Source: Takakia lepidozioides
Taxonomy: Eukaryota > Plantae > Bryophyta
Assembly (NCBI GenBank): GCA_030704615.1
Contig: CM060735.1
Span: 1 to 64,000, forward strand
DNA length: 64,000 nt
Reading direction: 5' to 3'
In this document: positions 9,936 through 63,416 of the stretch, piece by piece
How the letters are laid out: the number at the start of each line of letters is the position of its first letter
How positions within the stretch are numbered: the first letter of the stretch is position 1
Program-made: the position numbers and the translations under genes
Notes under the pieces: generated by a model
Told to the model about the DNA's origin: nothing
Database searches by the model: none
The model's input: the letters and a program-made list of their open reading frames with translations, nothing else

Positions 9936-12300
9936 ACGGATCTGGTAAAATATTTAACATTTTCTATGATTCTTTCTCTTCTAGGTATTCGGGGAATTTT
10001 CTTAAATAGAAAAAATATTCCTATTACGTTAATGTCAATTGAGTCAATGCTACTTGCAGTCAATTTGAACTTTTTGGTATTTCCTGTTTATTTGGATGAT
10101 ATGATGGGTCAATTATTTGCTTTATTTGTTCCAACGGTGGCAGCTGCGGAATCCGCTATTGGGCCGGCCATTCCGGTTATAACTTTTCGAATTCGCGGGA
10201 CTATTGCAGTGGAATCTAGGGCGACCGTTCGCGTCGCCTACAGTCATTGTTTAGCCATATGGATAATATTTGCGGTCCTGTGATAGCCATATAGCAAACC
10301 ACGCGAGACCCTATTCCGCGTGCCGGGCATAGAGCTTACCCAACCACCGTGTGAACGGGTGGGAACCACAGCATGCTCTAAAAACGTAGTTGAGGGGAAG
10401 AGGAGAGAAGCTTTCTTTTCGGAGAGAGAAGACCTCACGGTAGGTATGTTTTTTAGGCTTTAAACTTGCTTCTTTTCCGCCCTGAAAAGCGCAAAGCGCT
10501 TTCTTTTTCGGGCCCCTCCTTCGGGCCGCGGGCAGCGCTCGGTGAATAAAATACGTTTGACCCGCGGCCTCCTTCCTGGTTCGGTGAATGGAAGGTTCGA
10601 ATAAAACGCAGCGGGGAGCGCATAGCGAAAAAATTTATAGGGTTTTTCCGAACAAAGGCCGAAAGTTCGCGAAGCAAACGAATGACTTTAGCCCAAACGA
10701 CCCGAGACCACTACGCCAGCCCGCTATTGTACGAGATGAGCCCCTGCTCTGGCAAATCGAAGTCTCTTTCGGTCAAACTGGACCTGCAGTTAACCACGGG
10801 GAACTCCCCTGTGGTAACGCATACGAATGCACGCTGTCAAGCTCTCAGTCTGCCATTGATAAATTGCGGTAAGACCAGAATGGGAAAGGAAACCCTGCGG
10901 ACATTGCAGATCCTCAACGAGGGAGCAGATTACCCAAACTACTGGGGACAAGAGACCAAACGACATCTCGATGCAAAACGGCCTTGAACCAACAACCGGC
11001 CAAGAACCGTAGGCAACACCGGTGAAGTCCACTTCAGTCATCTGGACGAAGGTGGATGGCAGAGGGCCCATAGTACCCGCCCAAACCGAAAGGGCGCAGC
11101 AAAAAAAATAATTTTTTTTGCTAGAACTGCTATCGGAAGGGAAGGGGCCTAAGCGTCTGCTATACCTTAGCAGACCATATTCAACCAAGTCCTCTAGCCA
11201 GGCTCCCACGGATCCCGAACGGGATTTGTCCGAAAATACGAGGAAAAGAAAGATGGGGGGGGGGCTGCCGCTTCGAGGGACCTTTGGATTATTAGCTTTT
11301 GGAAGACTAGGAAAAACTATTAAAACCTGCAAAACGTCGTGGGCAACCCGGACTTATGGATCATTTACGTCAAACCAAGGCCGCGGGACCTGGATCGATG
11401 ACACTGATACCAGACAGAACGACCATTGATGGGACCTCGAAACTGCGAGCCCTACGACGGGGCGGGGCGCAGTAATCGAGAAACAGTTCACTTGGGGAGG
11501 CACAAAACGAATCTACACGCTGCGCGCCTTCATTCGCTATATGGACGAAGCAGAAGGAGAGGCCGCTGGTGTAGAACGACGCTATACGTTCTGGGTTCGA
11601 AGACCTGCTTCCTTTCATCTAAAGGCTGAAATGGAACGCATAGCCAAAAAAATATAAATTTTTCTTCCGGCGGTAGGTGTCACGGACACCTAGGTGGAAG
11701 CCCGGTAACGATCTGTGAGTGGAAAGGGTACTCCACGCGAAATACCAGGCCAAAAGATCCTCACTATCGGGATATACCGAAACCCTTACTGTCTGCGATG
11801 CCGGCTCGCTGGCGTCCTTGTCAGAAGCCCTAGCTCGACTATCCGACATTCGATACGCTGTGAACTGCAGAGTAAACTCTGCTGTCAAGGATCCTACGGC
11901 ACAACTTGCTTGGTGACTAACACGCGGCGTAACTGCTCTTCGCGTTCCCTTCATTATGTGCGAATCTTGAGAGAATGCATCGTGTTCGGGGTCTCAAGGA
12001 CGGGCTCAGAGAAGATAATGAAAAAAAAAGGTTTCGTTGTTTCATTATCCCCCGCCAGAATCCCCCATGATCGCTATGGCGAGAAAGCGAGTTTATTGAT
12101 GTTACTTAAGCCACTTGATGAAGGCCGGCCACTGGAGAAACAGGCCAGGACCTAACGACGGGAGCAAATCCAAACAAAGGTCGAATTGGAGAGCCGTATG
12201 ATGGGCGACCATCTCGTACGGTTCGGAGAGGGCTCGGGTACCAAAGCATTCAATATGTGTCCGGGAAAGTTCCACTCTATTTAATTGCATGAAGGGATAA
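9936..12300 (+). CDS. nad4L: NADH dehydrogenase subunit 4L; exons 9936-10218 and 12281-12300; ACG start
   Basis: (M)[27 protein letters not shown]...AAAESAIG...RGTIAVES|INCMKG*. Confidence 0.96.
10219..12280 (+). mobile_element. group II intron nad4Li283g2
   Basis: Starts GGGCGAC after nt 283, DV GAGCCGTATGATGGGCGACCATCTCGTACGGTTC at about 12191, ends ACTCTAT. Confidence 0.93.
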
Positions 12301-59560: not shown

Positions 59561-59875
59561 TTATTTTTTTTTTTTCTTGTTTCCCACGTAGAATTCCGTT
59601 TCGATATTGTATACCTTTTCCTTTACAAATTTAAGGAGGTTTACAACTTTTGACGCTGGCAGCAAATTGAGTTACTTTTTGATGATCTATTCCAGTACAA
59701 CAAATGAGATTAGGCTTGAAGCGAAAAACGCGAACTGAAGGCGTAACTGTAACTTGAAGTCGAATCTCAGGACTAAATCCTAATTTTGAATATGAAATAG
59801 AGCCTTGTGGGGTACTACTGGCTTTGTATCCAACTCCAACCAATTATTAAAAAAAAAAAATAATTTGACTTCCAT
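59561..59875 (-). pseudogene. rpl6: rpl6 pseudogene
   Basis: MEVK, then a frameshift, then GVGYKAS...KLGFS...GIDHQKVTQFAA...KPP*xxKGKGIQY, with TAA in place of the conserved E. Confidence 0.85.
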
Positions 59876-59892
59876 AAACTCGACTTGATTTT

Positions 59893-62485
59893 TTCTATAA
59901 ACTCGGCATAGAATCTCAACACCACCCAAATTGGTTCTTCGTACTTCACGATCACATATCAGAGCCCCCTTTGATGAAGTGGATAAGATTATTATACCAA
60001 GCCCTTGCTTTTTCTTGATAGACGAGTTGTTGATGAAGAAATTAGAAACCCTGGTTCGGAGATTGTTTCCATTCTTTTTATTGAACCTATTCCAGAAGAG
60101 TGACACTTTAATTCCCAAGCTTCCGTTTGTTTCCTTAGAGAATCCGTGAATATAACCTTCATTGTACAAAATTATACAGAAATCCTAACAGAGACGCGAG
60201 ACGAAAACACCAGGCGGTGATGCCGACAGGCAGAGAAGACCAAGCGTTTTATTCTCCTGTTTATTTTTTTGGAATAATTAGGCTAGGTGTAGGCCCTTCC
60301 CCCCAGGAGAACCATACGTGAAAGCTTTCCCTTCATACAGCTCAAGTTGATTCTCGGAAGCCTGTCGGGCGTCCGCAGGCGCTTTCGGGGCATTCTTGGT
60401 TCATTCGCAAATTCAGTATTACCTTGCGTGACTTGCTGGTGGCAAGTAGCATGCAAAGGTTAGATGTTAGAAGTATCCCAGCCGCCACCTCTCGACCGAG
60501 GTTCGATGTGGTGCAGATCCACCAGTTCCCCATTTTATAATGACTCTCCATAGACTATACACCGGTAATCACACCTGCGCGGTAGACTTCCTCTTTGTAC
60601 GGAGATAGAATTATAAGCATTCTGCGCTTCTAATAATAGCTCTGGTCCTCGCTTAGGAGGTATGGGTCGAACCCTTGTTTCAGGGGTTTGACCATTACGG
60701 ATTTGACAGTTGTGATGTCGAACAAAAGCTGCTTGTCTGACGCTCTCCAGTCGTTTTTCCGGTGAGGGGACGGGAAAGTCTATTTTATTAGTAACCACCT
60801 CATCGGGCGGGTAGGGAGTTTCTTGTAAGCCCATCCGAGCATGCTGCACCAGACGTTAGTTCCTTCCCTGCTTGGTTTTATAGTTGCGGCGGATAAAATT
60901 CGCACGTAACTGGACCGACCTCTCAGGATAAGCTTAAAATCTCGTGCAATTATAGCAATGTGGTTCTTCAACGCCACCAACTCGCGCACCCTGATACGCG
61001 CCACACTTTGTGGGCTAGGTAGGATTGTGATACGATAACAGTTTACGCTCGGCGAGACGTTGTTGAACCTAGGGCGGCGAAGCCCGTGGTTTCAATATCC
61101 TTAATCCTAGAAGACCCTGCTGGATATTTATTACCTTGGTTTTGGCCTCTCCGAAGACAAGACCGCGTCCTTTTTGGAATTGCGCGACTGCCGATTCTAC
61201 CACTTCGGTCAGGAAGGTCGGGTCGGCCCCAGTGATGACGGAATCGTCTGCATACCTTTTCACGTGACACTTGGACGTTGGCCTGGGAGGGGCTTTCGCG
61301 CATTCCAGTACCACCGCCTCAAGACCGTTGAGGGCGACATTGGCCAGGAGTGGGGGCATCCTGCGGCCTCGCGAAGTGGGCCGATCGATATCGTCTGAAC
61401 CCATAGGAATGAATGAATGGGGGTGTCTGATTGGCATTCCACGATGAGGTCGACTGCCGGAAGATAGAGCGCTGGCATTGCCCCGTCTTTCGTGGTAGGA
61501 AAGCCCAGCAGACACTTCTCATCCGTCTCGGGTTTGGGGCGCGTAGCGCGGCGCACAGGTCAGGCTCGGTCGGTATTAAGAGGCCGAAGGCCGCACATCG
61601 CTGTAGAAGCGCCAGAAAACGTAAAGCCAAAAATAATTTATATTTTTGTTTTTCGAACTGCGCTTCGCGCCTCGGTCTCCTGTCGATTAGTGGTCCGAAT
61701 CTAACCATCCACACCCGGTGTTCCAGCACCGGAATAGTTACCCGTCTCACCGCCGGGGTCTATGCGCTGGGGCTAGTTACTAGTTTGCCTCGGAAATTGT
61801 AGACCTGAAAACGCCTACGGACTCCCATACCACCACAATTTAAAAAAAGGCAGTTTTTGTTCTTCGGGCGCCGCTTCTACGGTTCAACCCAGTGCTTGAA
61901 CACGCCGAGTTGCCCTCATATTTGCTTTGATCCAATTGTAGTAAATGTCACTTTACCCAAGTAAGCCACCTTTCGACGCAGGTCACGTAACCCTATCCGA
62001 GCCTTTACAGCTCGGTCTTCGCTTTTTTGGGTTCCCTCTACCCACATCTCGTCATATGCCCTTACGGGCGCACCTCCATATGGAGAAATAGGGGTTTACC
62101 ATGTTGTTCCATTAATAGCACCTAACCTATGCCGATTTTTAGGACTGTACTATACCCCGGGGAACTCATGCGGTTTCGACATGCCCAAAATACAAAGGCA
62201 AATCCGTTCACAGTTCACAGTCTGTCAAACTATCCAGTCGAGCCCGGAGGCTCGTCCTGGTCATCCTTGACGAGCTTTTAGACATCCGCTTACGGTGTCC
62301 CCCCTCAACTCAACCTAGCCCCTAGCTTGGAAGTACGTTGTTCCCAAGGCTTCATACCAAGTCTTTTCAGTAAAGGAAGGCTTGAGTAGGGTCAGGCAGA
62401 AACTGTTGCCCGATGGGAACTTTCCCCATATGGCTATTAATGTCTTCATGTCGCACCTAGATAAAAGATTACTTGATGTATGCAG
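59893..62485 (-). pseudogene. rps8: rps8 pseudogene, interrupted by a group II intron
   Basis: Exon 1 reads (CTG)HTSSNLLS-S|I. Exon 2 fragments LYNEGYIHGF, GLGIIILSTS.KG, DREVR and GGVEILC carry stops and frameshifts. Confidence 0.85.
60277..62456 (-). mobile_element. group II (IIB-like) intron at rps8 position 29, with degraded RT
   Basis: Starts GTGCGAC, DV GAGCTGTATGAAGGGAAAGCTTTCACGTATGGTTC, ends CCTAGCCTAAT. SYGFRRYRS, PLLANVALNGLE and RYADD fragments are present. Confidence 0.9.
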
Positions 62486-62551: not shown

Positions 62552-62851
62552 CTACCAACACGATTTGTTTACGCCTATTAAAGAACCTTTAGATGCTAAT
62601 TCACGAGAAACTATACGAGAAACGCGAAATAACTTATATACGGGACGAGGGCGACCTGTGAAAATACATCGGTTTCTTACTCGTGTTTTGGAACCATTTC
62701 TTGGCAACTTAGACGACTTTAAAAAATATTCATAACGTATCTGATTAGGAAGGTTTTTATGCCGAGGAATGGCTTTACATTGCATTCGCTCCAATTCATA
62801 TTTAGCCACAAGCAATCTACGTGTGTGATCTCGTATAATTTGATTTGACGT
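62552..62851 (-). CDS. rps14: ribosomal protein S14; ACG start
   Basis: (M)SNQIIRDHTRRLLVAKYE, KLPRNGSKTRVRNRCIFTGRPR and GVNKSCW. Confidence 0.95.
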   Translation of the reverse strand, partial: TSNQIIRDHTRRLLVAKYELERMQCKAIPRHKNLPNQIRYEYFLKSSKLPRNGSKTRVRNRCIFTGRPRPVYKLFRVSRIVSRELASKGSLIGVNKSCW

Positions 62852-62855
62852 ATGA

Positions 62856-63416
62856 CTAAACCTCTTTTTGCAAAAAGCCACTCCACGAAATGAAAGTCTC
62901 ATCTTGTGTGTTGGCTGGAGTAACAATAGTTACATCGAACCCTCGAATATGCTCAAAAATCTCGAAATGATTTTGTATTTCCGGAAATGATCGTAACAAC
63001 GACGTCGCCATTGATGATTGAATGGGGTTTTTTTGTATTTTGACTGGGTAATCGTAAAAAGATATTATCGTAACAAGTTTTTCCGAAAAATTATACATGG
63101 TATACCCTCGTAGAGTGCTTCGTGCTAGGTAAGTGACATATCCTGTGTCTCTCTTTGACTCTCGATTTAGTACAAATTTATTGAATCGAAACGACTTTCC
63201 TGTCGAATCTCTACTTCGTGTCTGTATTAATTTTTGACCACAAACAATCTCCATAGCTAATTTTACATTTTCTATTAAATCAGAGGGTGCCTTTGGAACT
63301 ACTATTATTTTACACAATCTAGGAACTTCCATAATGTTGGCATAATTGAGTTTTAACAACAAATCTTGACGTAATGAATTTTCGTAATGAAAACGGAGTC
63401 TATTTGGAGTGAACAT
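62856..63416 (-). CDS. rpl5: ribosomal protein L5
   Basis: [29 protein letters not shown] and [10 protein letters not shown]. Confidence 0.95.

Follow-up and report, generated by a model that had tools for sequence, protein, structure and literature searches.

The mitochondrial rps8 pseudogene of mosses quite probably harbours an ancient and decayed group II intron, which is most likely no longer spliced. In the 64,000-nt stretch of Takakia lepidozioides DNA analysed here (hereafter the window), this intron is 2180 nt long and extends over 60277..62456 on the minus strand. It follows nucleotide 29 of rps8 in liverwort numbering, which gives rps8i29g2 in the usual nomenclature. The element would have been inserted before the lineage of the window, Sphagnum and the peristomate mosses separated; rps8 would then have died, the maturase ORF would have decayed, and deletions would have removed different parts of the intron in different moss lineages. 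What is annotated in mosses as an rps14–rpl6 spacer with an rps8 pseudogene may largely consist of rps8i29g2.

The window comes from a plant mitochondrial genome and carries rrn18, rrn5 and 12 tRNA genes, as well as cox1 with its several introns, ccmF, rps2 and tatC; group II domain V is matched 13 times. Its right end is occupied on the minus strand by the gene cluster rpl5–rps14–(rps8)–rpl6–rps13–rps11. The upstream gene rps14 (62552..62851, minus strand) was delineated from its Pfam Ribosomal_S14 match and by aligning its protein with those of mosses and liverworts. Its product shares 89–90 of 99 residues with Sphagnum-type sequences and 81–84 with other mosses, and the rps11 protein is grouped with moss proteins at the 90% cluster level. 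These rps14 and rps11 similarities suggest that the genome belongs to an early-diverging moss outside Sphagnum. A short-read contig of a different run (L007) agrees with the intron stretch at 99.95% identity, and contigs from several further runs also cover this stretch.

Some other features of the window deserve a mention. At the start of rpl6, a 12-T homopolymer at 59848 has one base more in contigs of two runs (X7 and X9) than in the assembly. With the extra T, the rpl6 N-terminus reads differently, and two TAA codons come next in frame with rpl6; this could reflect either a homopolymer assembly error or an unusual rpl6 start. Another group II domain V match (47.4 bits), without host gene, is found on the minus strand at 619–727, in the trnfM–rrn5 spacer (entry 619–1649). 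Since family F06 intron fossils have been reported in the rrn5/trnM-CAU spacer of Sphagnum palustre and Anthoceros agrestis in the 2023 survey (PMC10012718), it is probably the same F06 fossil. The small-subunit rRNA match (2724–5689) is 2966 nt long where the model has 1533 positions, which implies large insertions or expansions in this gene, and no group II match was reported within it.

Read on the minus strand, the locus runs CTG CAT ACA TCA AGT AAT CTT TTA TCT AG, then GTGCGAC...CCTAGCCTAAT, then T ATT CC. The conserved group II 5′ end GUGYG is present as GTGCGAC at 62456..62450. At the other end, the Rfam Intron_gpII (RF00029) domain V/VI model gives a full-length match at 60345..60277, with 41.3 bits for a gathering score of 40. 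This match terminates exactly at 60277, the 3′ boundary set by the first-pass annotation, whose placement of a group II intron at nucleotide 29 of rps8 is borne out at both ends. Domain V (GAGCUGUAUGAAGGGAAAGCUUUCACGUAUGGUUC, 60309..60343), a hairpin with the AGC triad and a bulge, is delineated by the RF00029 and RF04357 alignments, and domain VI (60277..60303) appears in the RF00029 alignment as a short stem with one mismatch, where A60284, 8 nt from the 3′ end, is the candidate bulged branch point. RT, X and En remnants lie inside the intron.

The remainder of the RNA architecture is less sharply drawn. The 5′ part of domain I (62250..62412, minus strand) is matched by the Rfam group-II-D1D4-7 model (RF02012) below threshold, with 27.5 bits for a gathering score of 34 (E 0.003), and single-sequence folds do not decide the architecture of this domain. 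A scan for EBS1/EBS2 against the 5′ exon returned several candidate pairings, but 60% of shuffled sequences also give one. The minimum-free-energy fold of the 3′ end of the intron was no better than that of shuffled sequences, and the Rfam covariance model was used there in its place.

The host gene was analysed by comparing each exon with liverwort rps8 on its own, the exons being kept separate in all searches. In a tblastn search with liverwort rps8 (P0001), the 29-nt exon 1 (62457..62485, minus strand) reads LHTSSNLLS where the liverwort protein has MHTLSNLLS, 7 of 9 residues being identical. The liverwort rps8 proteins start with MHTLSNLLSSIKNAQ (MHTLSNLLSSI), and the intron splits the codon AG|T in such a way that the T ATT which follows it provides the S-I of this same N-terminus. 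The assignment of the upstream piece to rps8 and the restoration of the N-terminus across the split codon, as both had been put forward in the first-pass annotation, are in agreement with these alignments. Exon 2 (59897..60276, minus strand) was identified by tblastn of P0001 against this exon alone and by a Pfam Ribosomal_S8 match over positions 36–126.

The frame of this gene is heavily damaged. Its start position is CTG, where liverworts have ATG. According to tblastn against liverwort rps8, a 46-nt out-of-frame deletion in exon 2 follows S10-I11 and has removed codons 12–27. A second frame change, between Cys42 and Pro46, corresponds to a 4-nt deletion near 60214 that is not shared with Sphagnum. 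A TAG codon stands at 60187..60185 where Trp55 (TGG) is expected; it is not repairable, since plant organelle editing proceeds only from C to U or from U to C. Two further frame changes are observed in exon 2, and the conserved core LKYHSSGIGVIKKMKTISKPGF is found in a different frame again. The DNA over 59600–60310 is confirmed by target-capture-like contigs of another sample (X9). Splicing would not restore an open, conserved rps8 frame, given the 46-nt deletion, the TAG codon, the frame changes and the CTG start. A degenerate rps8 adjoining rpl6 is indeed found in moss mitogenomes, and such a pseudogene is on record for Physcomitrium, Anomodon and Tetraphis; intact rps8 was retrieved by protein search from liverworts only. 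Judged from its sequence, the host of the intron is this known moss pseudogene and not a working gene.

The intron-encoded protein has undergone a comparable ruin. Remnants of an RT-X-HNH protein extend in domain IV over 60427..61577 (minus strand), as mapped by tblastn with P0053, by Pfam RVT_1 (E 5e-5) and by a match to PDB 6ME0 at E 3e-10. The mapping query P0053, a 566-residue protein with RVT_N, RVT_1, GIIM and HNH domains, is the closest full-length relative found. On the minus strand, RT motifs 1–3 are spread over two frames at 61577–61349, RT 4–7 lie at 61392–61111, the X/thumb domain with its motif LILRGRSSYVR at 61031–60579, and the HNH endonuclease with its motif C..C...LHHIEP...CH at 60672–60427. 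The frameshifted RT motifs listed in the first-pass annotation (SYGFRRYRS, PLLANVALNGLE and RYADD) could all be recovered, in three different frames. The remnants are collinear with P0053 in five pieces and three frames, with 5 stops and at least four frame changes. The collinear RT, X and En pieces are 29–52% identical to this protein, and tblastn found no counterpart in the intron to its residues 1–100 (the N-terminus) or 169–227 (a gap of about 60 residues in the RT). The description of the intron as complete and RT-encoding is correct for the ends of the RNA, but not for the ORF.

For the RT 4–7 remnant, the T.el4h maturase (6ME0) was the only solved chain matched at E up to 1, and P0053 itself matches 6ME0 at E 1e-111; the protein atlas returned only generic bacterial RT clusters for the RT relatives. 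The ORF is a fossil, which would once have coded for a complete maturase of chloroplast-like type with RT, X and HNH domains, and nothing suggests present-day mobility of rps8i29g2.

The transcripts of the locus could be followed in assembled contigs. One run (X7) is identified as RNA by C-to-U changes on the coding, minus strand in rps14 and rpl5. One of these changes, at 62850, converts the ACG start of rps14 to AUG; another, at 62607, converts a Ser codon of rps14 to that of a conserved Phe; two sites lie in rpl5, at 62887 and 62918. The DNA of a second species (X10) carries T at 62644. A 1265-nt contig of the RNA run proceeds unbroken from rpl5 through rps14 and exon 1 and across the 5′ splice site into the intron. 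The coverage of this run has a hole at 60145–60291, and the 3′ splice site is crossed unspliced by a contig of another run (X8), whose RNA nature is no more than a guess. The 62457|60276 joint, whose detection had been proposed as a check in the first-pass annotation, was looked for in four runs and found in none of their assembled contigs, which may miss rare forms. Unspliced RNA is present, and a minority of spliced RNA remains compatible with these data, as contigs drop rare forms. The intron would be transcribed as part of an rpl5–rps14–...–rpl6 transcription unit, from which it is most likely no longer removed, or removed inefficiently. Splicing would most likely have been lost because nothing selects for it in a pseudogene.

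Homologous copies of the element were found in other mosses after their neighbourhoods had been fetched through the rps14, rps13 and rps11 proteins and through a 62-residue ORF obtained by the RT search. Collinear copies sit between rps14 and rpl6 in both Sphagnum-type and Bryopsida-type mitogenomes. The Sphagnum-type 141-kb contigs (L008–L012) align with the window over 4.5 kb, from 63500 to 59018, at 81% identity and with the whole intron included; a copy on a nuclear chromosome of Sphagnum tenellum (L001/L002) aligns collinearly in the same manner. In the Sphagnum-type copies, about 70 nt are missing, a loss that takes in the last part of exon 1, the 5′ splice site and about 53 nt at the start of the intron, and domain VI is decayed. 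The Bryopsida-type contigs are represented by L021–L024 (105–112 kb), whose rps11 is identical to that of Physcomitrium, and by L003, whose rps13 clusters with those of Tetraphis and Hyophila. They match the window only from 61637, 61325 or 61172 down to 58334, and retain only the 3′ 1.0–1.4 kb of the intron together with the rps8 pseudogene. In a second, closely related species (X10), the two intron ends occupy the same site, and an internal 438-nt deletion (60350–60787, seen in a low-depth contig of depth 3) removes the X and HNH remnants and stops 4 nt short of the Rfam domain V match.

The most complete of these copies is that of the window genome, where exon 1 and the two splice sites are retained and domain V/VI still reaches a group II score; with the Rfam model, this domain was found at E up to 0.01 in the window organism and in none of the other moss copies. 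The context of the 46-nt deletion in the host gene (TTATTCCAAAAAAATAAA) is common to the window and to the Sphagnum copy, and L003, in which the splice site is lost, keeps only CAAAAAAATAAA of it. The presence of collinear copies in Sphagnum-type and Bryopsida-type mitogenomes implies that the insertion predates the split of these moss lineages. The simplest history would be a single insertion before this split; rps8 and the maturase would have died early, and independent deletions would have come afterwards.

Pieces of the element also occur in other settings. In Sphagnum tenellum, the nuclear chromosome scaffold OZ234852.1 (L001/L002) carries at about 11.39–11.41 Mb two inverted copies of mitochondrial rpl2..rps13, intron fossil included, which are nearly identical to Sphagnum-type mitochondrial DNA. 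At 4000–4212 of L014, a contig 107 kb long with 33% GC, 213 nt of the Sphagnum-type RT fossil recur at 97.7% identity beside a psaA fragment, and probably represent organelle DNA that now resides in a different genome compartment.

The Sphagnum copy also allowed compensatory changes to be considered, using the minimum-free-energy fold of domains I–III obtained from the window sequence alone and a partner-permutation test. Pairs changed on both sides and yet still paired in the Sphagnum copy numbered 10 for 5.2 expected (P about 0.01), and the long-range helix formed by GCUAGGGGCUAG with CUAGCCCCAGC shows three G-C to A-U changes. The substitution rates in domains I–III do not differ between paired (0.206) and unpaired (0.209) positions. 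There is here a weak hint that the ribozyme fold remained constrained for some time after the lineages split. Such a constraint sits oddly with the pseudogenising 46-nt deletion, which is common to all lineages.

The 2023 survey of Zumkeller and Knoop lists 161 streptophyte mitochondrial group II introns, with Sphagnum, Flatbergium, Physcomitrium, Anomodon and Ulota as its mosses (PMC10012718). Position 29 of rps8 is not among them. The sole rps8 entry is a fossil of the lycophyte Phlegmariurus, rps8i51-53g2f, which is 868 nt long, 79% identical to nad5i392g2 and without maturase; it is assigned to family F02, described as having neither a maturase nor a moss member (PMC10012718). No paper on an intron in the moss rps8 pseudogene was found in full-text literature searches, and rps8i29 appears to be an uncatalogued insertion site within the literature that could be searched, in keeping with the doubt of the first-pass annotation about any earlier record of it. 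The g2f fossils of this survey, in Phlegmariurus and in hornwort and Sphagnum intergenic regions, have, like rps8i29g2, decayed with their host and persist in slowly evolving mitochondrial DNA. The Phlegmariurus fossil also shares its host with rps8i29g2, namely an rps8 pseudogene between rps14 and rpl6. Compared by description, the two elements differ in their site (51–53 in the lycophyte, 29 here), in their length (868 and 2180 nt) and in the maturase remnants of rps8i29g2. The lycophyte fossil also differs in its host lineage, since rps8i29g2 occurs in mosses, for which the survey lists no such fossil at the rps14–rpl6 locus.

As for its protein, the RT 4–7 remnant likens rps8i29g2 to the chloroplast-like RT-X-HNH introns, such as T.el4h of Thermosynechococcus. 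Unlike this type, its protein is broken in at least four places, with 5 stops and about 160 residues missing. The closest full-length relative is encoded (as P0212/P0053) by an intron in the mitochondrial large-subunit rRNA gene of an AT-rich eukaryote (L025). That intron matches the same Rfam domain I subfamily, group-II-D1D4-7, which scores above threshold in L025 and below it in rps8i29g2. It differs in its host gene, its organism and its intact ORF, and the relationship is distant. Over 4005–10918, L025 displays this rRNA group II intron with its intact RT-X-HNH ORF, followed by group I introns with LAGLIDADG ORFs; the metagenome project that yielded this contig also supplied some of those from mosses. 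Within the window, a cox1 intron (36709–39390) with an intact 893-residue RT/GIIM ORF is also closest to 6ME0, and the attempt to tell the two intron ORFs apart by solved structures failed, since both match this chain best.

Several other readings of the locus have to be weighed against an ancient, unspliced relic. The intron may still be a working ribozyme, removed with the help of nuclear-encoded splicing factors even though rps8 is dead, or because some residual function of the locus needs its removal. The intact 5′ GUGCG, domain V and bulged A of domain VI speak for this, as do an Rfam score within the range of the other introns of the window, the weak compensatory signal relative to Sphagnum and the more advanced decay of the other moss copies. 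It is nonetheless unlikely: none of the four runs yields a spliced joint, the edited RNA contig passes the 5′ splice site unbroken, the TAG for TGG, the frameshifts and the CTG start put the host frame beyond C-to-U repair, and domain VI is short and mismatched. Similarly unlikely is a scenario in which rps8i29g2 would be an uncatalogued moss-wide intron whose window copy still folds and perhaps splices. The insertion and the decay of its maturase would in that case have eliminated mitochondrial rps8 in the ancestor of mosses and left it dependent on a nuclear copy, and the surplus of compensatory changes would indicate a ribozyme still under selection after the Sphagnum split.

The origin of the element has been read differently as well. 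The first-pass annotation had proposed a lineage-specific retrotransposition, and had found the style of the RT motifs to resemble that of the cox1 intron ORF. A recent arrival of a cox1-intron relative in an otherwise intron-free rps8 would agree with the absence of the site from the published catalogue and with the uninterrupted rps8 of liverworts. It is refuted by the collinear homologues in Sphagnum-type and Bryopsida-type mitogenomes, and is extremely improbable also in view of the heavily decayed ORF. The likeness to the cox1 intron ORF is weak, at 28–31% protein identity with no nucleotide similarity, though the closest solved maturase is the same for both; in a blastn search of the intron against the remainder of the 64-kb window, an AT-rich match of 50 nt was all that came up, and no nucleotide paralogue. 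Orthology with the Phlegmariurus fossil, numbering apart, is very improbable too. The two sites lie in the same gene and region, 22–24 nt apart, the published label of the fossil itself varies between 51, 52 and 53, and the introns of plant mitochondria resemble one another at their 5′ ends. Against this stand the length of the lycophyte element, its 79% identity to nad5i392g2 and its place in a family said to be without maturase and without moss member, the 2180 nt of rps8i29g2 with their RT, X and HNH remnants, and the S-I found directly after the intron, which fixes its site at position 29. An ancient insertion into a gene that has since become a pseudogene remains the preferred reading of the moss element.

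No new mechanism is revealed by this intron, since fossil organellar group II introns are already well known. Patterns of mitochondrial group II introns are used by specialists as markers of major land-plant clades, and rps8i29g2 adds one insertion site to the intron catalogue used for deep plant phylogeny. Most of the 1.5–3 kb rps14–rpl6 spacer of mosses would consist of the remains of a maturase-bearing intron. Both this intron and the death of rps8 would predate the divergence of Sphagnum, the peristomate mosses and the window lineage, and the independent deletions of one and the same element could serve as rare genomic markers for the early branching of mosses.
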